64,000 nucleotides of DNA from Oculina patagonica (lineage: Eukaryota), in contig NC_135764.1 in assembly GCF_052425735.1 (NCBI RefSeq), positions 12,400,001 to 12,464,000 of the forward strand, in the 5' to 3' direction. Positions 37,763 through 56,246 of this stretch are shown here, in pieces (the stretch's first letter is position 1; each line of letters begins with the position of its first letter). Made by a program: the position numbers and the translations under genes. The notes under the pieces were generated by a model. That model was not told where the DNA came from. It worked only from the letters and a program-made list of their open reading frames with translations, and did no database searches.

Positions 37763-40700
37763 CTTGACTGCAGTTATACCCAAAGTACTCATCATTGCAG
37801 AAGCAAGACTGGTTTTCGTAAGTCATCAAGTCATAGTTACAGGTACCATGACCACTGCACAGCATCTCGGGTAAGCAAATACTACAATCCAGTGGTTGTC
37901 TTGTCCAGCCCTGATCACAGAAACAGCTCCCATTGAAGTCGCAGCGCCCGTGCCCTGAGCAGCGAACGTCTGGTCTGCACACCGAACAGTTCTGTCCGCT
38001 GTAGTAGCTGAGACAATCGCACGTGCCATTTCGCAAGCACTGACCATGCCCAGAACAGAACGTGGTCGGGTCACATCTGGAACATCTCCCATAGGGCTCG
38101 AACCACTGACGTTTCCATCCTTTGTAGCAGGAACACGTGTAACTCCCTTGGTTGTCAATGCAGTATGAATTCTCAACACAAGTGTGCAAACCAACGGAAC
38201 ACTCGTCAATGTTAGTGCAGTTTTGTCCATCGCCAGTCCAGCCTGGGTTACACTTGCATTTATAAAAACCAAGAGTGTTGTAGCAAGTGGCGTGTTCCCC
38301 GCACGGAATAGAGTCAACTCTACATTCGTCTATGTCTGAGCATTGAAACCCGTTTCCAGAGTAGCCCGTTATGCAGCTACAGTTATATCCACCAATGTAA
38401 TTATGACAAGACGCTCTTGGATGGCACTGATTGAGATCACTGCTCGAACACTCATCTAAATCTTCGCATAACAGAGTTCTGTTTCGGTGATATCCGTCCA
38501 AACAGGCACAGACAAAACCTCCTACAGTGTTTACACAGAAAGAGTTATGGGTGCAGTTTGCAGTTTTTAAAGAGCACTCATCGACATCGGAGCAGTTTTG
38601 TATGCCATTTCCAGTAAATCCTGATTTGCATTCACAATTGAAGGATCCCACTGTGTTATAACAAGTAGCATTGAGATGGCAAGTGTTATTTGCAAGGCAT
38701 TCATCTGTATCGTGGCAATCCCATTCTCCGTCGTTACGTTCATATCCCTGTAGACATACGCACTCGTACGACCCTGCTGTGTTCTTGCAGGTTGTTCTGT
38801 TTGTACAGTTATGGACATACTTGCTTTGATTACTGACACTAGTTTTCAAGCTTATGTTCACTGCAAGATACCAAGGAATGGAGATGACAGTTGTGACGTT
38901 CTTTCCGGTTTGAACAACGTCTACAATAGCTTGAATACAATCTACTTGCTCATTGTTAGCTTCCTCGCAGGCACAAACCAAAGTAGTGTTGTCAACATTA
39001 CTTCCATTGTTTGAAACGTTACGATAAACACATGTTTCTACATTGGAACAGACACCTGGTTTACATTCTTCCAGTCTACCTTCAACCGTCTGTTTGATAG
39101 TCCCTTCACATTCGTCAATTTCGAAACAAGCATCCGCGCTCTGAAGGAACCCTGATCGGCACTTGCACTCGAATCCTCCAATGAGATTGACACAGTCAGC
39201 ATTAGTATCACAAGAACCATACATCTGTGGACTGATGCACTCATTAATGTCCATGCAAGCCGTGCCGTTTCTATCTTCAGTGTACCCCTCTGGGCACACA
39301 CAGTAATGCTCCATCCCAACCGCAATACAAGTCATGTTTTCATTGCACGTGTCGTTACCGGATTGACAAGGGTTCACAGCGTCACACGATGAGTTGTCAA
39401 CAGCATCACATTTGCATTCATAACCGCCAACCAAATTTTGACATACTGGGGCTGATAGTGGACAGTTGAACATGCCCCACTTGCATTCATCTATATCCTC
39501 ACACTTTCGTCCAGCGTTAGAGAAGCTTCCGATACAAGCGCAAAGACTTCGTGCAGTTACATTTGCATTTGCTTTACTTGCATTGTTCGTGTCATTACTA
39601 CACTGATACTCCGCGCAAACTCTACCTTTGTCTTCAAATCCTTGCAAACATTCGCAAGTAAAGCTCCCGTTGGTATTCGAACAGGTCGCGAAAGTATCAC
39701 AGTCGTCCAAGCCAAGGTTGCATTCGTCGAAGTCTTGGCATTCGTCGTTTTCCTGGCCGCTCAATGTCCAGCCTTCTTTACAGACACATGAATAGTTCCC
39801 AGGAACATTTCTACATATCTGGTTTGCACCGCAAACAGTACCATTAGCACACTCGTCTACATCAGTGCAATAAAACCCATCACCTTGCCATCCCTGTGTA
39901 CAAGTACATTCGAAACCACCAATACTGTTGCTGCAAATCGCATTAGCTTCGCCTTTGTAGGTAGAACAGTTGTGTATCTCTTCTGTGCATTCATCCACAT
40001 CAATACACAATAAGCTGGTGTTTGAGGGAATTTTTTCCACGATTTCTGGAATTGAAGCATTTTCTATTTCTCGCCATCCTTGCTTGCAAACGCAGGTGTA
40101 ATTCCCTTCAGTGTTTAAACAGTCTTCGTTTTCATAGCAAGAATGCGTATTTAGCTCGCATTCATTGACATCTGTACAGTTGTAACCATTTCCGGACCAC
40201 CCGCTCTTGCACACGCATTGATATCCTCCTGGTAGATCGATACATTTTGAATTGACACTGCAGTTATGGCTTCCTTCTTTGCATTCATCTACATTCTCAC
40301 AGAAAATACCATTTCCTGCCCAGCCTGGGTTGCAGTAGCATTCAAATGTTCCGTTGGACTCAATACATCTTGCATGTATTGAACAAATATCGCTCCCATT
40401 GAAACAGTTTCCTCTTTTTACACAAGAGAACCCATCTCCATAAAACCCGCTTTTACACTGACACTGCACAAACGGCAATGACTTGTTTTGGACGATGCAG
40501 AAGGCATTTTCATCACAAATGTTTAAGTGTGACTCCGACTCACAACCTCCACAGTCTAAGCCATCAAAATCACAACGCTTTGTGTCACATGCTTGGTCGC
40601 AGGTTCCGTCATTAACAGATGTTACGGAGCAATCCGCCGAACATATGCAATCACCCCCATCAAAGCCACAAATTCTGTTGTTACATTCAATGTCACACTG

Positions 40701-43700
40701 CCCGTTACCGATAGAACTTTTTGGACAGGTCTTCGAGGAACACAAACAGTCCATGCCATCGTAATCGCAAGATTCCACAAAGCACTCGACATTGCATATT
40801 CCATCTCCTAACGTGGCATTCCTGCAATCCGGAGCACACTGACAATCACTGCCGTCAAATGAACATTCCTCTACGTCACATTGCGATTGACAGGTGCCAT
40901 CGGCAACCATACCCAGACGACACCCTGGACTACACTCTTTAACAACTGGTTTAGGGCAGTCACCGTTATCGAAGTCACAGGCCTGTACATTGCAGGCAGA
41001 ATCGCAAACACCATCACCTCGAAAACTTGGAAGGCAACCTTCAAAGCACAGCTCTGTTGTTAAAGCAGAAGGCTTACAATCTCCGCCATCGAAGTTACAA
41101 GCAGACACGTTACACGATATTTCACAAAACCCGTTAGCAATCATTGGAGGAGAACACGCCTTTGGACAGTTCTCTCCTGTTACTTTTTGGGCACAGTCTC
41201 CATAGTCATACAAGCAGTCGGCAACGTTACACTCTTCATCACACATGCCGTTACCTTGAAGATGTTTACTGCAAGTGCAATTTGAAACTAACGCACAGTC
41301 TCCTTTGTCCAGACCGCATAATACCGTATTGCACTGGTGATCACAAAAACCATCTGCCAACATTTTTGGACGGCATCCAGGACTGCATTCTTCCTCAACG
41401 CAATCACCACCATCAAACTTGCAAACGGTGTTGTTACACATCTGATCACACGACCCGTCTCCAAGCCACGAATTTGGACAAATGCAAACATTCTGGCAGT
41501 CTCCTTTGTCGCTTAAGCACTTAGGTATGTTGCAATCTGGATCGCAAACACCATCACCAATCCAACTTTCCGGACATAACGGAGTGCATAGCTTCACCAT
41601 TGAACAGTCATCTCCATCCCAACCAAGGTCACAAACGCAAACGCCTTCGATGCAAGTACCATGACTAGAACATCGGTTTGGACAGGTGTTGATTTGACAT
41701 TTTTTACCCGTATAGGCCAGATCACATTTGCAGCTTCCGTTAGCGAAGCACACTCCGTGTCCAGAACAGGAGGTTAAGGAATCACATCCAGGTGCTGTCT
41801 GCAGTGTCGGGTCATAGCGACTAAGCCTGCTAAAATCCATGCTTTCACGTGGTATTTGAAGATGAAAATATGGAACTTCGGATACACTCACATTTTCAAC
41901 GAGTTCAAACTCCAATAATCGGGCTTCCGTTAATATTTCAAGGCCAAGTCGAAAGTTGCTGTCGTTTTGCAGTGAAGCAGTATTAATTTCAGCGATATCA
42001 TAGTCCGTACCACCTCTTCCGAACGGAGATACGTTATATACTTCAAGCTCAATTAGTTTTTGTGCTGTTAGATAGGTCATCTTTTCGATTGACGTGTTCT
42101 GAGCTGTTAGAAAACCAACATATTTAACAATTCGGCGCCTGTACTCTCTGTAAACTAGTGTGGAATGAAGATCAGATGAGTTGACTATTTCCAGCACAAC
42201 CAGTTTGGCAAGAGAATACACGCTGAGTGATCCACGCGAGATTACGATGTACTTCTCCCCAGTTATCTTCTGTAAGTGGAATAAGACATTAAGAGAACTA
42301 ACCGAATAAATGTCATGAATACTTTCCGGCTCTAATACGAACGCGGATTGGTTAGAATAGTATGATTTGCATTCTCCATTGTCGTAGTGACATGCTTCTG
42401 TATTACAGGCTTGATCACACATGTCATTGTTGAAATGTACTATTTGCGAACAGCCAGGGCTACATGGAATCAGGTACCACAAGGGATCTTTGTAAACCCC
42501 GTCTTGTGCAACACTTACACTCACAAAATTCGGCAGTATGGGCTTTTCATTTGCCAAAGCTGTTCCGATACTCTGCCCACTCTGAACACTGGTAATGTTG
42601 TGAGGTGTAAAATGAGACACAGTTACAATAAAACCCACCCACTTGCTTTTAGGCCAACCAGTGATCTCGATACTGTCACCCTTTATTTTGACGTTTCCAG
42701 GAATCGGAGAATTGATAACTTGCAATTCATTAACAATCAGATCAAGCCAGTGCGTCAATCTAAAACAGCCCTCTAGCAATGCTCCAGTGCATGGTTCCTT
42801 GATGTTCCAGTTACATCTACCCGATTCAAGACACCTTTCTCTGCTCCCGGTGCCTTTACACGAAGACAACCCAGTGTTTTCAGATGTTATGGATCGAAAA
42901 AGACCACAGAAGCCATCTATTCCAGCCCTGTTTTGTGAAATGCGTAGGATTCTAGGGAACAGTCCATGAAATTTTGCATTTGTGGGACTAACGCACTTTG
43001 GATAATTTGGTGGTTTTGGAATGGTTAAAGGTGTATTGAAGGCTACCTGTAAAGTTCCGATATGTGCAATGTTTGTCAGTCGAATTTCTGCTTCTGTGAC
43101 TTGTAACCATTCCGATAAGGTGCGAAGACTATCATTTTGTTTAGTCACGTAAACGCAGCCCCTTTGTGAACAATCTTTCCCATAAAAGCCTGGAAGACAA
43201 AAACATTGACCAGTTTTGCAAATTCCTTTACCACTACATAGGCGACCTTTGTTCACTGGACATGCCTTTGCACAAGTTTCATGGAACCACTTCGCTGGAC
43301 TGCATAGAGCTGGTGAGCTTGGTCCTAAGGGTGTACCTTCAGTGCATATGGGGCTTTCTTCATAAAACTGGGAACCACACCAACCACAATTTGAGTTGGA
43401 AACACACTGAGAGCATTTCTGATTCAGGTGACACGTTTTCGGGCATGGCGTTCTGTAGAAAACCTCGTCTTGCGCACAGACAGCACCCGTGGTGTTTGAA
43501 AGACATTTCTGAGAGCCTTCGCACCAAAGGCAGCTTCCTGTGGTTCCACCGAAAAGACAAGATTGACAAGACGTGTGGATGTTGCAAACGCTTTCCTTAA
43601 ATGTTTTGTTCTGATACCTCGTTATATTGAGCTCCGACCACAAAACCTTCGTGAAATAGGGTAGACAAAAATCTTTTACTGGGGAAACGAAGCCTTCTAA

Positions 43701-46700
43701 GTTGGATGTCAAGTTTAATAAGGTGGTAATGGTAATCCTTGGGTGCCAGTTTCCATAGCTGATCAGCGGCTTGGAAAGATTGTAGAATGCCGAGTATCTG
43801 CTTTTCCAGCTGTATTGAATCGGATTTAGCTCTGGCGGGCAATAATAATCATGTATAATGTTTGAAAGCTTCTCATTTTCAGAAGAGTTAGTAATCAGCA
43901 CTCCAAGCATGTACCCATCGACAGCACTGTTAATGGTTGACGTTGGAAGCCTCTCTTTACAAAAGGTGGTTGCTTCCTTTGATGTATTCCAATTGCTGAT
44001 AAAGTCATCTGTGCTGAGAAGGACAGCCGTAATCCAGGTGAAAGTTTGCACTGGCTTTTGGATGTGAGGGTTAAATGTGAAGCTTTCATTTCCAACACTT
44101 CGCCCTAAACTCTCCATTTCCGACGAAAGTACTCCTGCCAAAATAAAATCAATTTCGATGTGGGATTCAGCGAAGCTGTAATGCCCTTTAAGCTTTGTTA
44201 ACATTCTGTCGTCTGTGTTGAGTTCTTGTGATACAGAGTAGGGCACAGGATAAAACAACGATAAATACTTCCAAATCTTGTTAAGGTGTAACTTTCTGTT
44301 ACCAGCCTCTGCTGACTGCGAGAGAGACCACGCCAGCGATGCAATTTGAGTTAACGATTTTTCCGGAAAAATCCTCTCTATCGCCCAGATGTCGCAGTAC
44401 AGGTGATCACATGGGGTACTTGAAATGTTGACAACAAATGATTTACTGCTGCTACTGACAAGGTTGCTTGCTGTTACATTCACCACGAACTGACCAGATC
44501 GTGGGAAGTAATGCGATACTGTTTCAGTGACATTGTGAAGCGATGTATTGTCACCAAAGTCAACAGTGAAGGAAACATTTGTCCCAATGGCTGATGTTCG
44601 TAGGATTACAGCACGGCAAGCTCTTTGATCTCCACTGACATTCAGCCTGATATTTGAGACCGGCACTTGAACGATCACTACTTCAGTAGCTGTGCTATTT
44701 CTGACGTTATTCTTAGCGTCTATATCCACGACGTACACACCAGGCGAGGTAAAATTAAGTGACGTGAAACCATATTGACTAAAAGCTCCTAAAAAGCTAT
44801 ACTTGTACTGAACGTTTGTCCCTGAGAGCGCAAACGAAGAGAATGAAACCTCTTCTCCAACTGCTTTTGGGCTGTCGGATATTATTGCCAAACCTTTAAT
44901 GGGTTTTTCGCAGAAAAGACCATCGCCAATCCACCAACGTCTGCACACACATGTAAACGATTGGCCATCAGGTCCATAGCGAAGGCAAGTAGCATTGGGA
45001 TGGCAGTTGTGTTCACCAGTTGCACACTTCCCCTTTTTAATAATTTCGTCAAGGGCAGCTACCTTATCTGCTCTGTCTTTAAGAGCCTTTTCGAGGTTGG
45101 CAGAAGCACGTAGCGCTTCTTGTCGTGCTGCATCCCGCGCGTTTCTCTTCAACTGTTCTTCTTCTTTTGCCCTTCCGAGTTCCCTCTCTTTTGTCCTAAC
45201 ACGAGTTCGCTGGTCGCTAAGATTTCTCTGAAGCTTCATTTTGTCCCTTTCCTTTCGTCTTTTTTCGTCAGTGAGAGCATCCCTGCGGTAGATTGATCGT
45301 TTGCCAAACCATCCACTAACGGTTTTTATAACCTTTCCTGCGAGGTTTCGGAGGCCTCGGGCTATCTCAGATGCTATTTTGTGGGCAATGTTAGCAATTC
45401 TGTTTACCACGTCTCTAAGTGTCCTCGAAACGTTTTTAAAAATTCTCTTCGTTTCTTTCAAGACACTGTCGAGGCGTATGACTTTTGCCACAGCTCCTAT
45501 CCAAGCTTTTCCCGTTTCAGCAGCCTTCCTGCCTGCTTGCTCTGCTGCCTTTGATGCTTGTTCAACGGTTTTCTGTGCTGCTTCTACAGCCTTCTTAGCC
45601 GCCTCTCGTGCCGCTCTCGCTGCCTCAGCCGCAGCTTTAGCAGCACGTTCTGCGGCATTAGCTAAAGCTTTCTCTGCATCGATAAGGTTATTGAGGATTT
45701 TTCCAATATCTTTAACAAGATTTGCGCCAAGTTTGAATCCCTTTTTTAGCAGGTTTTTTATCAGTTCTCCGGCATTACCGGCGAAATTTAAAAGTCCATC
45801 TGCAAGTGCACGCAAAAGCTGAGCAGGAGTCTTAAGGAAAAGCTCTTTAATTAAGGCAGGCGCTTCTTTCTTGACGAGGCTAACAACAAGTGCTGGAATT
45901 CTGTCAGGCCTAGCATCTTTCGTGTTGAATGTTAACAGTGGAAGCTTTATGTTAACTCCCATAAAAGAAAATGAAACTTTCAATGAACTTCTTCCCGGAA
46001 ATGAAATCTTTAAGTCGCAGTTAAAGCCGGTGCTCAAAACAATTCTTCCAACGTCTTGACCGAAAACACTTATTTTGCCAATGTCAATTCGCAGGTGAAT
46101 GTCAATGCTCACCTGTGCTCGAACGTTAAAGGATATGCCACGTCTAATAAGTTCAATGCTTATTTGTGAACCCATAAACAGAGATGTAGCCTGTATAACT
46201 GATCTGGATGGAGAGTCCTTGATGTAGAGTCGGGAATCGAGCAGTCGCACACCTAAAAGACGCAGATCTACTTTTGCATCTAAAACGAACACAAGGCCCG
46301 GACCATAAGCAGCTTTAACCAATCCACCGAACTCAACGACATCTTGAAAATTGAATTTCAACTGTCCAACAACGGTTATTGTGTCTTTGGTTACACGTAC
46401 CTCGCCACTTATAAGGGGCACATTACCAAGTTTGACTTGGCCTTTTGCAGAGATTGTCAGAAGATTTGACGAATCTTCCAACTTGATATTTGCTTTGGCA
46501 TTAAAACTTATTTCCACCAGGTTTGTTATACCAGCGTCCAGTCGTAAGGACAGACCAGCATTACCGAAATTCTTCACTCGAACTGCGACATCTGTAGAAA
46601 GAAGGAGTAAATTCGAGGAGGCTATCAGTAAAGCATCATCTCCAGTTTCCTTTACGGGATATGGCCAGATTTCTTTGTTCTGCTTTAACTCGTTCGGTGT

Positions 46701-49700
46701 AGACGCTGCAAATTTTAGCAAAGGCCATCTGAAAGGACCAATGTTAAAAGCAATGTCCAAAACACGGTACTTGAGAGGAACGATTTGCAACAGCCACTTT
46801 GGTTCAAACGTTTTCATAAAATTCATCCAGCCAACAAGGAACCTTTTACCGTCTATTGGAGGGACGTCCAATTTAAGTCTCCTACCGCCAGTATACTTAG
46901 GTAACTGAAGCATGGTCATGTCATTTTTGTGAGACAGTTTCAAAACGAGTAACGTACTGTTAGCAGCTTTTAAGTCTTCCAGGGATAGCAGGTAGTTTCT
47001 TTCTGTATAATACCTCAAAAGGCCAACGAGAAGGGAGGCAATTGTGCTAAAATCTTTGAATTCAGGTCTTCGATGATATATTGTCGCCTGGGCCTTAACA
47101 TCAATAAGTGTCGCATATTTTATGGAAAAGGGAGCAGCAAATATCGGAATTGGCCAGTAACCCACGATTATGAAGAAACAGTCTTTGCAGACTATGTGTG
47201 TTTGCATTTCCTCCGCGTTTATAAGTAAAGGGTTTGTCTTTGGAAGACGTGACAAGAGTATAACGAACTTCAGATCCCATAGGTATACTTCAGCGTCAAT
47301 GTCTACAAAGGGTACCCCAAATGCTGACCCGATTGTGAATCGCCGTAACGAAATGGCTAACAAATCTCCTGTGGGTGAAACTGGTATGGCGACGTCCACT
47401 GACTCATCATTTTGAACTTGGAGACTGAACGTTAATGGGCCGTTCTCAGCGACTGAAAAGGCTACGGTTATTTCTTTCGGGAATTCTGGGCTCTTGAATC
47501 GTTCCATACCACTTGGTAGGTTGTCAATGTTACACCCAATCCTATTTAAGGCACCGATGATATCGGGAGGAGGCCAAATGGGAATGTTCTGTTTCAGTAG
47601 ATTGGAAACAAAAGGGATATTTTTGAAAAACTGTCGCATGATTGGCAGCGTCAGTGGAATGCACAATTTGTCTAATCCCTGAACATCAATGATAGCTGAA
47701 AAGCCGTCTTTTGTGTAAGCAAGCGAAGGGAGACTAAGTCTCACGTAAGAATCCTTCTGACAGAGCCAAGTAAAATCGCAAACGTACTCTTCTTCTACTT
47801 TGTTGCAGGGTATCAGCTCGTCCAGAATTGGTATAGTCTTGAGCTTGATTGCTAATCCTGTCTTCTCTGTTATAGAGATATCCATCTGTAGAGTGTCCTT
47901 GAAGACTTTGAATGGCAGCAGCTTATTAAGCGTATCGAATCCCGAAACGTCAAGGGATATCTCAAGTTCAGGCTCCTGTGGTGTGCTAAATACGATTTTG
48001 GGATCATAAAACTTTATTGTTAAATGGCAATCTAGTCCAGCGAGTTTGAGGTCAACATCAGCGTCAAGGAGTTTTTCCTTTAATGTAACAATAGCCAAAC
48101 GTGGTCTTACAGTTATCAATCCTTGAAGATCACTGAAGTGCTGTTCCAGCGGGATGCCCGTGAAGGATGCCTTGATGCCAGCTGTGAGCTCCCAGTCCTT
48201 GTTTTGCTTAAAACCGAGTTCCAAGTATTGAACACTAAGACTCGCTTTGAAAACGTTTGACGGGTCAGCCATGGGTAGCGGGAAACTAAAACCAACGTCG
48301 AAATCTTGAAGATCACATCGGATATTTGCACTGAGAACATTAAATCGAGGTTTGCTAAACGTAATGTTTAGGCTATTTAGAGTCACCTTTTTGAAGTTCA
48401 AGAATTCGTCTGGGACACTTTTTAGCAATTGTTCTCCACCAATCAGGCTTGCCAAGTCATACATACTCAACGGCTGGTGTCCGAGGTTCGTTATTTCTAA
48501 ACGTACAAAGTCCTTGAAAACGGACAGAACTGTTGGAACCACGGCTTTGAAAAGCTGTATCTCGACATAAATCGTAGGTGTGACAATTTGTTTGGCAGCA
48601 TGAAAGGGATTTGTAGCGAAGAGGCTGACGCGGATATGTCGAATAGTTATTCCCAAGGGAAGCCAGACGTCGGTAAGATTTGCTTCAAACTCGCACGTTA
48701 TGTTGAATATGTGAAATTGAGGGTTGGGAATGAACGAGGCTGTAAACTTCTTCAGCATGAATTTTTCGGCTTTTGAAAAAATCTTATCTGGAAAAAGCGA
48801 CTTTAGATCAAAACCACCACCAGTCAATCCAACGATGTTTGCTGCTGAGAGTTGATTTTCTTGATGTGAAAGAATGTGAAGTTTCCACGCCTGAGACGGG
48901 AATTGTGGCATTGTAAGGATACCGCGGGCCTGGATGATATTATCTCCTTTTCCAACCGTGATAAGGCATGTCAGTGTTCCAGCTACATTGACTTGGACGG
49001 CTGTCTTAACGCTAAGGTCAGCAGTTATGTTCTCTATCTTCAGCCAATTATCGACAAGAATTACTTGGTTTGGAAGAGAAAACTTCAAAGCAAAGCCTTG
49101 TACCTGCAGCTTTATCAAAGGAGGTTGTAATTCTAAGTTTAAGAACTTCAGTGAGATCTTTAACAAACGAAACGCTGGTGGAAAAAGGTCCGGTAAATCG
49201 AACCCACCAATCAGTAACTGGCCTAACTCTGGCAATGTTAGGTCTGGAAAACTTTGGAATCCAATCTTCATTTCAATTAAGTGTGGTAGAGGTGGTGGAA
49301 AGGGTATTCGGAAAGAAACTGGTAGGGCCTTTAGGACGAATGTACCGGATAGAGCTGCGTGAAAGCTGTCTCGGACGTTGAGATCCAGTGTAATGTTCTG
49401 AAATGTTAGTGGAAAGCCTTTCAGATTCCAGCGCTTTAGCGCAGTTGCTGTTAAATCTAATGAAATCATACGTGCCGAACGAGGCTCGAAATGTGCTTCA
49501 AGTGGCCATACTCGTACGTTTCCAATGAAGTCCGAAATTGGTGTTAGCATGCCAGATGGTATTAATTTCCCAACCATCGGAAGTACAGCGATTTTGGAAA
49601 GATTAAAAGTGACTGCACTCTTCAGTTTTAAAATAATCACAGACCGGGGGGAATCGGGTATGTTGCATTCCAGTGGAAGCACAAGGCGTTGCTCGTTATC

Positions 49701-52475
49701 CGACAGTTCAAGATTGCCAGTTATGACAAGGTTGTAAGAGGGTATATCGTTGAGATCTTTAACGCGCAGGTTCATGGTAGGTGCTATAAGAGAACAGCAG
49801 GACTTGAAAAAAGACCAAGCGTTTGATATCTGTAGTTCAAGGGAAAACGAATGCAACGATTCTAAATTTTTCGAGAGCTCTACTTCCGCCAACTTTACTA
49901 AAGACGCACCAATAGCATTCATGTCAAGAAGACTGGCGTCTGGCACACTCTTCAATTGTGGGACCATCTTTTGCAAAGCATCCTTCACCAGGCGTTCCAG
50001 GTCAAAGGCATTCATGGGCTTTACAAGACGCAAGAGGTGACCAGCAGATGAGTTTGTTAATTCGAGTTCCAAGTTTGTAGTTCCTAATAAAAGAAATCCC
50101 CTTAAGCTAAACAACTGAGGTGTCATAACGGCTGTGACATTCGAAATTTCAAGAGCTCCAATTCCACCAAGGTCCCACGATGTGCTGCATACAGCGATAA
50201 ACTCAGTGATTTCGAATGCTGTCAACCTTTCATCAAAAGTTATCTGTAGCTTTTGAAGAATTAACTCTGGAAGATATGACCCAAGCATCGTTGGAAATTT
50301 GCTTCTCGTCAGAATGCCAATAAGTTGCTTGAATAAAACACGAGGAGTGTCATGTTCAGGGAGGCTAATGGTAAGATTTCGTTGTTTTGATAAAGGAACA
50401 ACCATCTCAAAAGGTATGTGTACACTGCCCTCTACCAAAACGATCATTCCTCTGATCAACATGTCGAAGGACCCTTGAACGTTGACCTCGATCAAAAACG
50501 ACACATTTTCAACGCCGAAAAAGTCATCAAGAAGTTCCCATGAATACTTTGGGAGGGCACCCATAAATGTTACCTTTTCAAGTAAAAGATCACTTGACAA
50601 ATGGAACAAAGTTTTTTCAAGGGTAAAACCAGGTACGATTGCGAGTTTGGTTCTCCGCAGACCAGTTAAAGTTTCGTGAAGTGTTTCGCTAGCACTCCCA
50701 AAGAATGTACGATAAACGACCCTGATAAACGGCAGAACACCAAACATTTCCATTCGTCTCGAAAGCTCTATGACGTGGCCTCCGCTAGATGGTGGCCATT
50801 CAATTTCACAAGGTAAGCTGAAATTTCCAAGCATTATTTCACCGGTAACTCGGGTGCGATTGAATGTGTAAATCACTGTCATATTTCCAAGATAAAAGAA
50901 CGGAAAGTTCCATTTTGTTCTTGACGGTATTTCAACCCGAAAGGCTGTTAATAGGAAAGAACCAGTTAAACTCGAAGGAAACTGGATCTTCAACTTTTTA
51001 ACCAGGAAGTCTGTTAGTAGAGTCTTCAGAAAGGATGGGAAAACATTACTTAGTCCTCCCAGTTTTAAAATGCTGTTCAAATCAGCCTGTATCGTCTTTC
51101 CAGCTTGAAGCGATAAGGATAAGGCTTCGACTTTTGTTGGAATTTCGATCACAAAAGGAAATTCGAGGAATATTGGATTCCCGATCACAACTGTTCCAAA
51201 AACCTCTGCTTTGATTTCTGCGAGACGAGATCCTGGGAGAACAGCTACTTTGAAGCCTAACGTCGAATTCAACAATTTTGTCGGAATTGATGCTCCGTCG
51301 AGAACGTTCCATTCTGTCGGAATTCCAATCAAGATGACCATACTGGCTAGACTTAACTTTGGTCTCAAGCTGTAGCTAATTTTGAACAGGTAAAGCCGAA
51401 ATTCAAATGATGATAGATTCAATCGCATAAAGGCTGTGTCTGGTCGACGCTCTTTTCTTTCTTCAACACATGATAGAAGACTGTCGATAGAAATTGATGT
51501 ATTTCCGTTCTTAGCGTCTTTCATGGCATCTAAGCTCAGGAACCGTTTGGTGTTTTTCAGCATAGTAACCGATAGCTGTTGTCCACAGATGTCGATGGTG
51601 GCTTCGAATGTGTTACGAGGTTCCGTCAGTTCTAATGTGGCATTTCTTATAGTCACTTTGCCTAGAACTAAAAATGGTTTTGTCGAAATAGTCGTGACAT
51701 TGACTATTGAGATATTGGAAAGCCCAGGTGCCACGCGTAGGAAAAACTGCGGTACTTTGATGTTTTGTGAGAAGTTACCGATTGCTTCTAAAGTATTTCT
51801 ATCCATGTGTGAAGAAAACAACGGTACCAGCGAGCTGAAGGTGACAATGGCATTCTTGTCAGCACCGCTTATTTCCAAAACATCGTCTGGGCTTTCGGGA
51901 AAGTCGATTTCAATGGGCAGTCCTGGAATGCTCAAATTGGAGGCAACTTGATTAATCGCCGCGATAAAACCTTTGGCTTTCACTTTAAATGTGTAAGGAA
52001 GAAAACCTAGTTGAACAATCAGTTTAGGCTCAACGACTTTGAACTGAAATTTGTTCAAGGCATCCCATCCAGGGATACTGAACATCATATCAATCGATGA
52101 TAGGTTTCCATCATCAAAAGACAGTGTGAAAACATCAATGGCGAAACCAAAGTTTCCAACCCCAACCAATTGAAAAGAGGGCAATGAACCATTGACGCCT
52201 ACCTGTTTGGTGAATCTGTCAGCAAAGTCATATATATCAGGGACTGGGAAGTTCTGGTTGCTTGGTAACTGTATGCTTCCACTTTTGTTCAAAGGCCATG
52301 GAAACTGCACAGAGATGTTTAGGCTTCCAATTTTGACGTCAGCATGGTGTAGCCCGGAGCTTTCGTTCCAAATGTTGACAAGCTCGATGTTTGCTTTAAG
52401 CAAGACTTGCTCGACTTCCAGCAGAGAGGAAAACTGCCTTTCACCAGTGGAATAACAGCTAATAACGCACCATAG
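37763..52475 (-). CDS. Giant multidomain secreted protein, 14,713-nt exon (beta-repeat region, coiled coil, EGF, PKD, PGLYRP2-N-like, PSI, LysM, M23-like, LNR x11, Ca-EGF array)
   Basis: Uninterrupted ~4,900-codon frame. Acceptor tttacag ends at 52476 and is followed by LWCVISCYS, a plausible end of a signal peptide; donor G|gttag at 37762. Domains were recognised from Cys spacing and motifs. The ATG exon was not found. Confidence 0.92.
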
Positions 52476-53039
52476 CTGTAAATTTGAAACCAATATTCTA
52501 TTAGTCTATCGAGTAGGCTTAATCATATTCGAATAAACAATCATTTAAGAAAAACCACTTCTAATTATAATTTAAAATGTGTTGTGTACAGTTAACAGTG
52601 TGATCTCTGCGATGCAGAGTATGTCGTCTATACTAGCTAGCATTTACGCCAACGTATTGATGAAAACAGGTATTTAATAATTGGGAAACACGGCAATAAT
52701 AATAAGCATGTCAAAGTACTTTGTGACAACTCCGCAGCAGTAACCTAATTAATACCATCGGCGACCTTCCCAGTACCTTTTCCGTTCTCAAGAAATGGGA
52801 CGGATAACTGGACTACTTTATTCCTGAAATGCTATTCATTAGAAAAAAGAGGCCAACCCTCAACACGCAATCGGATTCCATCCTCACGCGAAACTATTTG
52901 TTTAGCCAAATGTAAATTCTTTATCATCTCACACCTTTCACCGCATATATCAGACTGTTCGATTATATCTTTCTATTTTGTAACTTGTCATGGCGACATC
53001 CAAACGTTGCGCAGAACTCTTATCGCTAATTTTTATTCT

Positions 53040-54463: not shown

Positions 54464-56246
54464 TAAACGTTGCCATAAACAACACGACAGAACTAATATT
54501 GAAATGAAATGTTCAAAACCCAGTGTGTATAATCCCATAAAGCAGAAATCGTTTCCTTTACTCGGAAAAATTAAAACAAACAAAATAAACCAAGAAGAAA
54601 AATAAAAACAAGGCAAAGTATCCATAAGTTATTCCCAGTTCTAAATATTGCACAGCTTTATACATTGACTTTTATTTTGCTTTAATAGTTTTGCTATCCT
54701 CTCCCACACGGTAACGTTAATAAATGAGACGAAACAATCATTACAAGTTAATTACAACAATAACGGAAAGGTGGGATATAATTCTGATCAAGTCTTACAG
54801 TATATGGATTACTTTAACAAGGCATAGCTTTTGCACACATACCAAACACACCAATGATTGGATCCAAAGCGCCATCTTTAGGCACCAAACACTGGGTGCA
54901 GCTCCCGAAAGATGTCAGACTGGGAACTGGATTTTGTAGAAGCTCTTTAGCCCTCAGTGACAATTAAATACTCCACTCTCGCCCCAATAAAAGCTTACAC
55001 CATCTTTGTAATTTTGAGGCTTTGCTGCTGAGTATAGATATCCGGCATAGTTTGGTAACGTTTTTAAAGGGATGCAGTGCATGCACCTACACACGTTTTG
55101 TCTTTGTTTACCAGTATTTGATTTCCAATACGCGAAAAAATGTTTTGCCGCGCCAAGATATTGTTGCCGATATAACGATGTACTTTGTTTTCATCTGATA
55201 AACTAAAAGCATTTAAGAATCGTTTGTACTCGGTTAAGATTCCTTGACAGATGAAATCAAGTCAATATTACAGCACGCAAGGCTTAATTATATATGGCAG
55301 AATGTTAGAAAGTAAATCAAAGCGATATGCGCTCAAAAGGAAGGTAAACAAATCACGCAGTTTAAAGGTGTTCATGTGTGACTATTCAGTCTTCCAGTAT
55401 TTAAAGTTAAAACGACACCAAGTATCAGCTAATATTAGCGTTTTGAAGAATTTTTTAAAAGGCCATATAACTCTTGAAGAACGTCCTTGAAGATCAAAGG
55501 ATTGCCAATATGTGATACTTTTAGCACTTGGACAAAAATAGACCTTAAGTCACAGAAAGGACGAGATCCATGAAGATATGAAGAATGTTGCCTAAATAAG
55601 TCTTTAAAGTGATACCTCATCTAGAAGACCACATATAATAAAAGGTAAACTGTCTTGTAGCTAGAGAACTGCTGGTATGTCAGATGCTGTTTGCAATGAC
55701 AATCAGTTATCCGATATGACTAAAAAGTGCGCGTAAGCTAGCGAGAAGCTTAACTTATTTATTGCTGACCATACCTGGAGACCATAAGATTTACAGAAAA
55801 AACTGGAATTGCAGATTACATTTTGTTCACCATAAAATCATTTGACAATCGCTTTTAACTTAATTAGAAATGACCCTGAGCCGAGCACGGCAAGATAAAC
55901 AATTTACATTGTTTGCAAAAGTCAGCCTTTAACCTTATTATAGGAAATTAACGATACATGTTCTAAAAGCGAATTTTTAAAAATTCGCGTTAATTTTATT
56001 TATGTAAGCACTTTTACTATAAGCATCTAACCAAAACTTTTCTTAAACTCGCGTTAATTAAATTATGCGTAAATTTTGTTCGCGTTGTTAAAATGCTTCG
56101 TTACATTCCTTCAATAAGGTATTTAAAGTTAAGTTCCCATGCATGAGCACTTGAATGGGCTGCATGTGCACGTGTATTATACATTATGCACTGTACTTTT
56201 CATAAACATTGACATGCTGTCTTTTTATTTTTAGGCGGTTGAAGAA

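Follow-up and report, generated by a model that had tools for sequence, protein, structure and literature searches.

A 64,000-nucleotide stretch of the Oculina patagonica genome (NCBI RefSeq assembly GCF_052425735.1, contig NC_135764.1, positions 12,400,001 to 12,464,000 of the forward strand; hereafter the window) encodes a giant, presumably secreted protein in which a bacterial-type N-terminal module meets an animal-type scaffold. The joint between the two is marked by a basic motif, K-R-[SA]-I-[YH]-R-R-D-[AIV]-L, that is nearly invariant in aligned coral proteins and likely forms a conserved processing-type hinge. We hold it to be an evenly balanced proposition that the motif is a conserved endoproteolytic maturation site in a hinge at the fusion joint, and a maturation cut by a proprotein convertase appears to be the most economical reading of the sequence. 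The cut itself, the enzyme, the site used, and whether the chains stay together are points that we infer.

Conservation around the motif was assessed in coral relatives. A word-indexed search identified 25 coral proteins with 92%–46% identity in the linker region, and cluster look-ups added further proteins, named from Oculina, Porites, Montipora, and Acropora. Two paralogues belong to the family in Oculina, and it is represented in at least two dozen other protein clusters from corals. Across 20 full-length sequences, no 10-mer of the 290-residue linker is better conserved than KRSIYRRDAL, whose rank over the whole protein, Cys-rich domains included, is 26 of 4,902. Both KR and RR are retained in 100% of ~98 coral proteins (those carrying the upstream anchor, with >55 distinct local sequences), down to 42%–46% identity, and insertions and deletions near the motif occur only just upstream of it. 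Invariant [KR]R sites are few in the open reading frame (ORF; 3 out of 22), and two of them are the KR and RR of the hinge. A second intron-free paralogue lies on the same contig ~16 Mb away (C7:28452291-28453523; open frame of 4,982 amino acids [aa]; 61% linker identity) and matches Oculina patagonica LOC144660575. It keeps all 11 motif residues through synonymous changes in 5 of the 11 codons, which indicates selection on the protein and not on the DNA. The string GKR alone is no more than chance would give (two occurrences in this protein versus 0.69 expected); its conservation exceeds chance. The third invariant [KR]R pair (ORF 1808–1809, ...YHRRPEF..., window 47065–47070) lies inside the beta region, where it may serve as another processing site or have a purely structural role.

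The motif is encoded on the minus strand within one open frame of 4,911 codons (window 37758–52493 in the ORF list), whose numbering is used here for all residues. A GenBank model from Oculina patagonica, KAL9966905.1 (5,365 aa), has 99.98%–100% identity to the window. Its layout comprises a short first exon at 54875, the giant exon, and four EGF exons (37496–34520), with tblastn giving 99.98% identity across 52475–37761. A splice acceptor (...tttacag/CTATGG, the slash marking the exon start) at 52475 opens the giant exon. The 5,365-aa protein begins with a signal peptide, MALWIQSLVCLLWCVISCYS, and the N-terminus is also the only place where a hydrophobic 19-mer exceeds a Kyte-Doolittle (KD) value of 1.8. 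With the signal peptide as its one strongly hydrophobic stretch, the product is predicted to enter the secretory pathway, without a membrane span, and to be secreted. A nuclear-localisation-type basic motif was rejected as an explanation of the hinge, given that the protein is secreted. Downstream of the last exons, a run of 500 N (window 32904–33403) represents an assembly gap or a mask.

The protein has different domain content on either side of the motif. A Pfam scan of ORF 1–2240 found no domain, and from ORF residue 2489 onward Pfam identified EGF, PKD, 11 LNR, and many EGF_CA domains. A structural model of the joint was constructed using AlphaFold2 (ORF 2090–2500, 43 aligned sequences). 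The model has strands to residue 2190, six low-confidence helices in 2196–2393, and one 89-residue helix in 2404–2492 with a predicted local distance difference test (pLDDT) score of 71–87. The sole helix break in the linker is formed by 10 residues, 2394–2403 (GWFGKRSIYR), with pLDDT values of 36–43 in a model of mean pLDDT 53. The sequence across the hinge motif reads ...GKRSIYRRDALTDEK.... The spacer that follows (ORF 2405–2487) is 53% charged and has 31 opposite-charge i/i+3 and i/i+4 pairs in 83 residues (0.37 per residue), with no amphipathic periodicity and none at 3.5–3.67. By sequence and model criteria it looks like an ER/K-type single alpha-helix.

A mechanism can be outlined from these features. 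A bacterial-type module (beta region plus amphipathic helical tail) would have been fused to an animal-type EGF/PKD/LNR scaffold, and the precursor would go into the secretory pathway via its signal peptide. There, a subtilisin/kexin-type proprotein convertase would most likely cut RSIYRR↓DA (Arg at P6, not P4), GKR↓SI, or both, that is, after R2404, after R2399, or at the two positions. Cleavage would leave two chains: an N-chain of ~2,380 residues with a cationic amphipathic helix at its end, and a C-chain of ~2,960 residues whose first segment is the charged spacer. The bacterial-type module would thereby acquire a free C-terminus, near the point where its bacterial relatives naturally end.

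The residues around both candidate cuts agree with known convertase preferences. Convertases follow the rule [KR]-Xn-[KR]↓ with n = 0, 2, 4, or 6 (PMC2820236), to which KR↓S conforms with n = 0 and RSIYRR↓D with both n = 0 and n = 4 (the P6 Arg). Furin-type enzymes read a P6–P2' core (PMC3281273), and the invariant R-S-I-Y-R-R-D-A has the length and position of that core. Sites that lack a P4 Arg and have basic P5 or P6 residues are documented in albumin (RGVFRR↓) and VEGF-C (HSIIRR↓) (PMC2820236). Both candidate cuts in the coral protein have a small or acidic P1' and an aliphatic P2'. In albumin, D-A follows the cleavage site RGVFRR↓, as it follows RSIYRR in the coral motif. At least 26 genomic matches to the convertase P-domain were found. 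Among cnidarians, cleavage at a plain KR is known for cnidoin and other nematocyst proteins, which are secretory but not neuropeptides (PMC4321713). A single RR↓ cut explains conservation from K (P7) to L (P3'), whereas a GKR amidation signal explains three residues only. A first-pass annotation of the window had placed GKR and a second RR at the border between two halves of a protein, behind an Ala-rich stretch and a cationic helix. All of these elements were found in one minus-strand frame, and the border falls where it was drawn, between a region with no Pfam domain and the EGF/PKD/LNR/EGF_CA region. Its further proposal, that the protein is cut in two, is plausible given the signal peptide, the invariant KR and RR, the predicted helix break, and the P-domain genes.

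Relatives of the N-terminal module were identified outside corals. An exhaustive phmmer search with ORF 1400–2490 yielded ~130 distant non-coral hits besides coral proteins. In one group of ~1,450–1,550-aa proteins, the match spans ORF 2120–2389 (E values 1e-12 to 1e-4) and ends near the hits' own C-terminus. Hits with bacterial names include the Anaerolineae metagenome-assembled genome (MAG) protein HLF26432.1, proteins from Bacteroidia MAGs, and Vicingaceae, and their contigs have operon-like packing. The ends of these proteins share the layout of the coral linker: the last strands, an ...EIFKDLF anchor (...LIKELF in corals), then an amphipathic helix. The bacterial helical tail has ~215 residues, is Ala-rich, and has a periodicity of 3.63. 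A profile of bacterial tails aligns collinearly with coral tails until 8–18 residues before KR, with no match beyond the hinge motif and no significant similarity to the spacer. Real coral tails score 24–47 bits with this profile, shuffled tails −5 ± 3, and reversed tails 17–31. Because reversed tails still score this highly, homology of the tails rests mainly on collinear architecture. In corals and bacteria alike, amphipathicity over 47 residues peaks in the module's last helix, and the charge is reversed, from −11 to −47 per 250 residues in bacterial tails to +7 to +26 per 157 in coral tails.

The bacterial C-terminus is conserved as W-x-x-[IV]-[SK]-[KS]-Y, and the coral tail reads ...VSGWF and runs on into the motif and a further 2,500 residues. 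No coral match that was significant or consistent in its placement was obtained with profiles built from the last 30 or the last 60 bacterial residues. An equation of coral ...VSGWF with the bacterial ...ISKY end was dropped on these grounds and because MAFFT puts the motif ~45 residues before the bacterial end. Since the residue-level match of the ends failed, the claim is held to a motif near the end of the module. AlphaFold2 modeled the beta part of a bacterial homologue with pLDDT 80–93 and gave its helical tail a pLDDT of 28–48, with no confident packing. In a Foldseek search of AlphaFold DB clusters, the beta part of this model matched entries auto-named AsmA-like C-terminal domain (E values 6e-10 and 2e-7, low TM-scores), and against the PDB no match had E ≤0.001. 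Scores for the tail in the language-model atlas stayed below 0.9, and the only hits of a PDB sequence search were designed helical bundles. All Pfam hits to the tails were below threshold (bacterial, 20–28 bits versus a cut-off of 90 for PF01442; coral, 13 bits versus 36 for PF07464).

The gene neighborhoods of the bacterial relatives were also recorded. An MBL-fold (Lactamase_B) protein is directly upstream of the family member at both loci examined. On the Anaerolineae contig DATDPU010000061.1 (111–16749), a 2,751-aa RHS/YD-shell protein precedes the gene group, and the family member is followed by a 758-aa protein with a beta/gamma-crystallin domain. At the other locus (447–8163), the downstream product has 678 aa. 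This neighborhood hints at a secreted or toxin-associated system. In the coral gene, a sequencing contig of 173 bases joins window position 46269 directly to 46501, so that 77 in-frame codons (231 bases) of the beta region are skipped; this could reflect an allele, the deletion of a repeat unit, or a chimeric assembly.

Several points weigh against a maturation cut at the hinge. Cleavage is predicted, and a basic motif may be conserved for other reasons. Low confidence in the AlphaFold2 model keeps the exposed hinge a prediction. The similarity between coral and bacterial tails appears to be largely a periodic pattern, and the coral tail is ~40 residues shorter than the bacterial one, making the shared end point approximate. 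Literature searches on the Oculina and Acropora proteins, by accession and by locus name, found no paper, and a coral skeletal-proteome preprint has no mention of the Oculina or Acropora family proteins. Expression was not demonstrated: two poly-A RNA runs yielded zero reads and were no test of it, and in the sequencing runs that contained the gene stretch it was present only in fragmented contigs, of low depth and uncertain type. In addition, a regular-expression scan of the whole ORF found no canonical furin motif (R-X-[KR]-R).

The missing furin motif also favors an alternative, in which the invariant basic block is never cleaved and serves, where the amphipathic tail meets the charged helix, as a structural hinge or as a patch that binds anionic lipids, sulfated glycans, or another domain of the protein itself. 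The unbroken conserved run of 10 residues, which takes in I, Y, D, A, and L, is docking-motif-like, and the neighboring EIARGLRNLAGK is highly conserved though not dibasic. We consider this alternative rather unlikely. The block fits the P7–P3' footprint of a convertase, occupies a predicted flexible break and not a packed element, and departs from the classical XBBXBX pattern of heparin binding. In a secreted protein, two perfect dibasic pairs with favorable P1' and P2' residues would also risk cleavage unless it were tolerated or wanted. Alternatively, the hinge could be cut extracellularly, in a regulated activation (e.g., upon microbial challenge) that uses a trypsin-like serine protease and not a Golgi or granule convertase. 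The predicted exposed Arg/Lys-rich hinge would suit such an enzyme, and the plain KR site of cnidoin is uncut in HEK293 cells (PMC4321713), so the cnidarian enzyme need not be furin-like. Nothing specific indicates such a protease, however, and the P6–P2' pattern suits convertases well, making extracellular activation quite improbable.

The N-chain released by a convertase cut would end in a cationic helix, RIFKN...SGWF (ORF 2350–2396). It has 47 residues, a net charge of +8, and a hydrophobic moment of 0.64. One face is almost purely I, V, L, and A, with 10 basic and 2 acidic residues on the opposite face. Among 4,865 windows of 47 residues in the protein it ranks 10th, and windows that combine a moment of at least 0.5 with a charge of at least +8 start at residues 2336–2352 only. 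These values and clean faces are those of a cationic amphipathic helix as found in linear antimicrobial peptides. A length of 47 residues is at the long end of the range for linear cationic antimicrobial helices. The tail as a whole has a net charge of +17 in Oculina and +7 to +26 in orthologues. Face analysis, moment, and charge thus bear out the Lys/Arg amphipathic helix of the first-pass annotation, and the Ala-rich coiled coil that it placed upstream does not stand. Periodicity in the Ala-rich part peaks at 3.57–3.67 residues with almost no power at 3.50, which rules out a heptad coiled coil. A second conservation peak of the linker (EIARGLRNLAGK, ORF 2376–2387, window 45350–45385) lies inside the last amphipathic helix, with Gly2380, Arg2382, and Lys2387 invariant.

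The same annotation had taken GKR as an amidation signal: a cut at GKR, carboxypeptidase trimming, and Gly-directed amidation would yield ...SGWF-NH2, either as the end of the N-chain or, with a further cut at an upstream KR (2349–2350), as a free 47-residue cationic antimicrobial helix. Corals and Hydra do make amidated antimicrobial peptides. The strength of the helix, just described, supports the proposal, as do a Gly before KR in 65 of 70 distinct sequences, with a hydrophobic residue (F or L) ahead of it, and genome exons that match the monooxygenase C-domain. This domain, Cu2_monoox_C, is common to PHM- and DBH-type enzymes and has fifteen exon-sized matches in the genome. Clusters of these matches on C4 (7.53–7.61 Mb) and C10 (11.06–11.21 Mb) suggest tandem arrays of PHM/DBH-type genes.

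Other observations speak against this amidated peptide. Gly is replaced by R, W, or V in the other five sequences, while KR and RR are never lost, and the two residues before Gly vary (WF 40, WL 8, RL 6, LF 5, VF and others), unlike the conserved C-terminal residues of peptides from amidated precursors. The upstream pair is dibasic in 61 of 66 sequences (QR, ER, or KM in five) and sits inside a predicted 53-residue helix. That helix closes a ~190-residue tail whose position and periodicity match those of the bacterial tail, and the equivalent bacterial helix is equally amphipathic without being cationic. GKR leaves the invariant SIYRRDAL unexplained, and no known peptide precursor resembles a mosaic protein of 5,365 aa. 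Because Gly is imperfectly kept and the end is variable, amidation is argued not to be the selected function. If KR↓ is also cut, trimming and amidation to ...WF-NH2 would be chemically possible. The sequence patterns make release of a small amidated antimicrobial peptide appear unlikely, and we regard the full chain of events proposed for the 47-mer as very improbable. Of the amidated helix of the first-pass annotation, the Gly is mostly kept, and GKR conservation in orthologues, on whose loss the idea was to fall, was found; a constant peptide end and release of the 47-mer were not supported. A short neuropeptide ending in GWF-amide was rejected, as its end would be variable. An internal G-K-R behind a cationic helix is not automatically a peptide-hormone or antimicrobial-peptide signal.

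If the convertase cut is real, a family of ~5,300-residue proteins matures into two chains, and the bacterial-type half regains a free C-terminus near the end of its bacterial relatives. The hinge cut would then offer a concrete and inexpensive experimental route into a giant, uncharacterised protein with a possible role at the coral–microbe interface. The amphipathic tail is otherwise equivalent to the bacterial one, and its change from acidic to basic is a clear adaptive signature. In a more speculative scenario, which we think improbable as a whole, corals took a bacterial AsmA-like beta-groove protein, turned its acidic, apolipoprotein-like tail strongly basic, fused it to an EGF/LNR scaffold, and evolved a convertase joint; the cut would then free a cationic, membrane-active giant effector of host defence of ~2,380 residues, possibly with a Phe-amide end, delivered by a microbe-binding C-chain. 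Coordinates of the features are collected in Table 1.

Table 1. Features of the giant protein gene, in window coordinates
Feature	Position	Strand	Basis
Exon 1, first 11 signal-peptide codons (MALWIQSLVCL)	54843..54875	-	First 8 residues of KAL9966905.1 mapped to window 54875
Giant intron-free exon, 4,905 codons + stop, coding for both protein halves	37758..52475	-	ORF list, sequence, tblastn
N-terminal module, ~2,190 residues, Cys-poor, beta-rich, bacterial-type	45924..52475	-	No Pfam hit; ~130 distant non-coral hits; strands to ORF 2190 in AlphaFold2
Amphipathic helical tail of the N-terminal module, ORF 2196-2393	45315..45908	-	AlphaFold2 helices (model H107-304, low pLDDT), periodicity, collinearity with bacterial tail
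Ala-rich stretch, ORF 2281-2302	45588-45653	-	Sequence
Last cationic helix, ORF 2341-2393	45315-45473	-	AlphaFold2
Hinge G-W-F-G-KR-S-I-Y-RR-D-A-L, ORF 2394-2407	45273..45314	-	Helix break and conservation
GKR, ORF 2397-2399	45297-45305	-	Sequence
RR, ORF 2403-2404	45282-45287	-	Sequence
Charged single-helix spacer, ORF 2405-2487, start of C-terminal half	45033..45281	-	Composition, AlphaFold2
First EGF-like domain of the animal-type half, then PKD, LNR, and EGF_CA arrays	44904..45029	-	Pfam; Cys pattern from ORF 2490

We compared the coral hinge and its flanks to known systems. The nearest precedent for the GKR signal is TCAP in teneurins, which also has a GKR amidation motif and convertase-like sites in a giant EGF protein of partly prokaryotic-gene ancestry (PMC9108700). 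The GKR of TCAP directly precedes the stop codon and bounds a conserved 40–41-residue peptide, whereas the coral GKR lies within the chain behind a variable peptide end, and the two are not homologous. Linear cationic alpha-helical antimicrobial peptides resemble the coral helix in its +8 charge, near-perfect amphipathic form, and possible Phe-amide end, but the coral helix sits in a 2,380-residue chain from which its release is unsupported. The tails share long Ala-rich amphipathic helices, a periodicity of 3.6–3.67, and the lack of confident packing with exchangeable apolipoprotein-like helices (ApoA1/A4/E, apoLp-III, phasins, and chlorosome CsmC). Coral and bacterial tail hits are below Pfam gathering scores, and this likeness may be compositional or periodic only.

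Closer parallels to the proposed cut are found among processed secretory proteins. Apolipophorin-II/I and apolipocrustacein precursors are very large secreted lipid-binding proteins that one dibasic furin-type cut divides into two chains (PMC1783640). They have no sequence relationship to the coral protein, their site is a canonical RX(R/K)R inside a lipid-transfer module, and lipid binding by the coral module is something that we infer. Cnidoin-type nematocyst sites show that a plain KR without a P4 Arg matures non-neuropeptide secretory proteins (PMC4321713); those sites release N-terminal propeptides, and nothing ties the coral protein to nematocysts. Although the coral site joins two giant halves instead of following a short N-terminal propeptide, and is preceded by a second dibasic pair with Gly, it shares R-x-[VI]-[FY]-R-R in a secretory substrate with proalbumin (RGVFRR↓) and VEGF-C (HSIIRR↓) (PMC2820236, PMC3281273).

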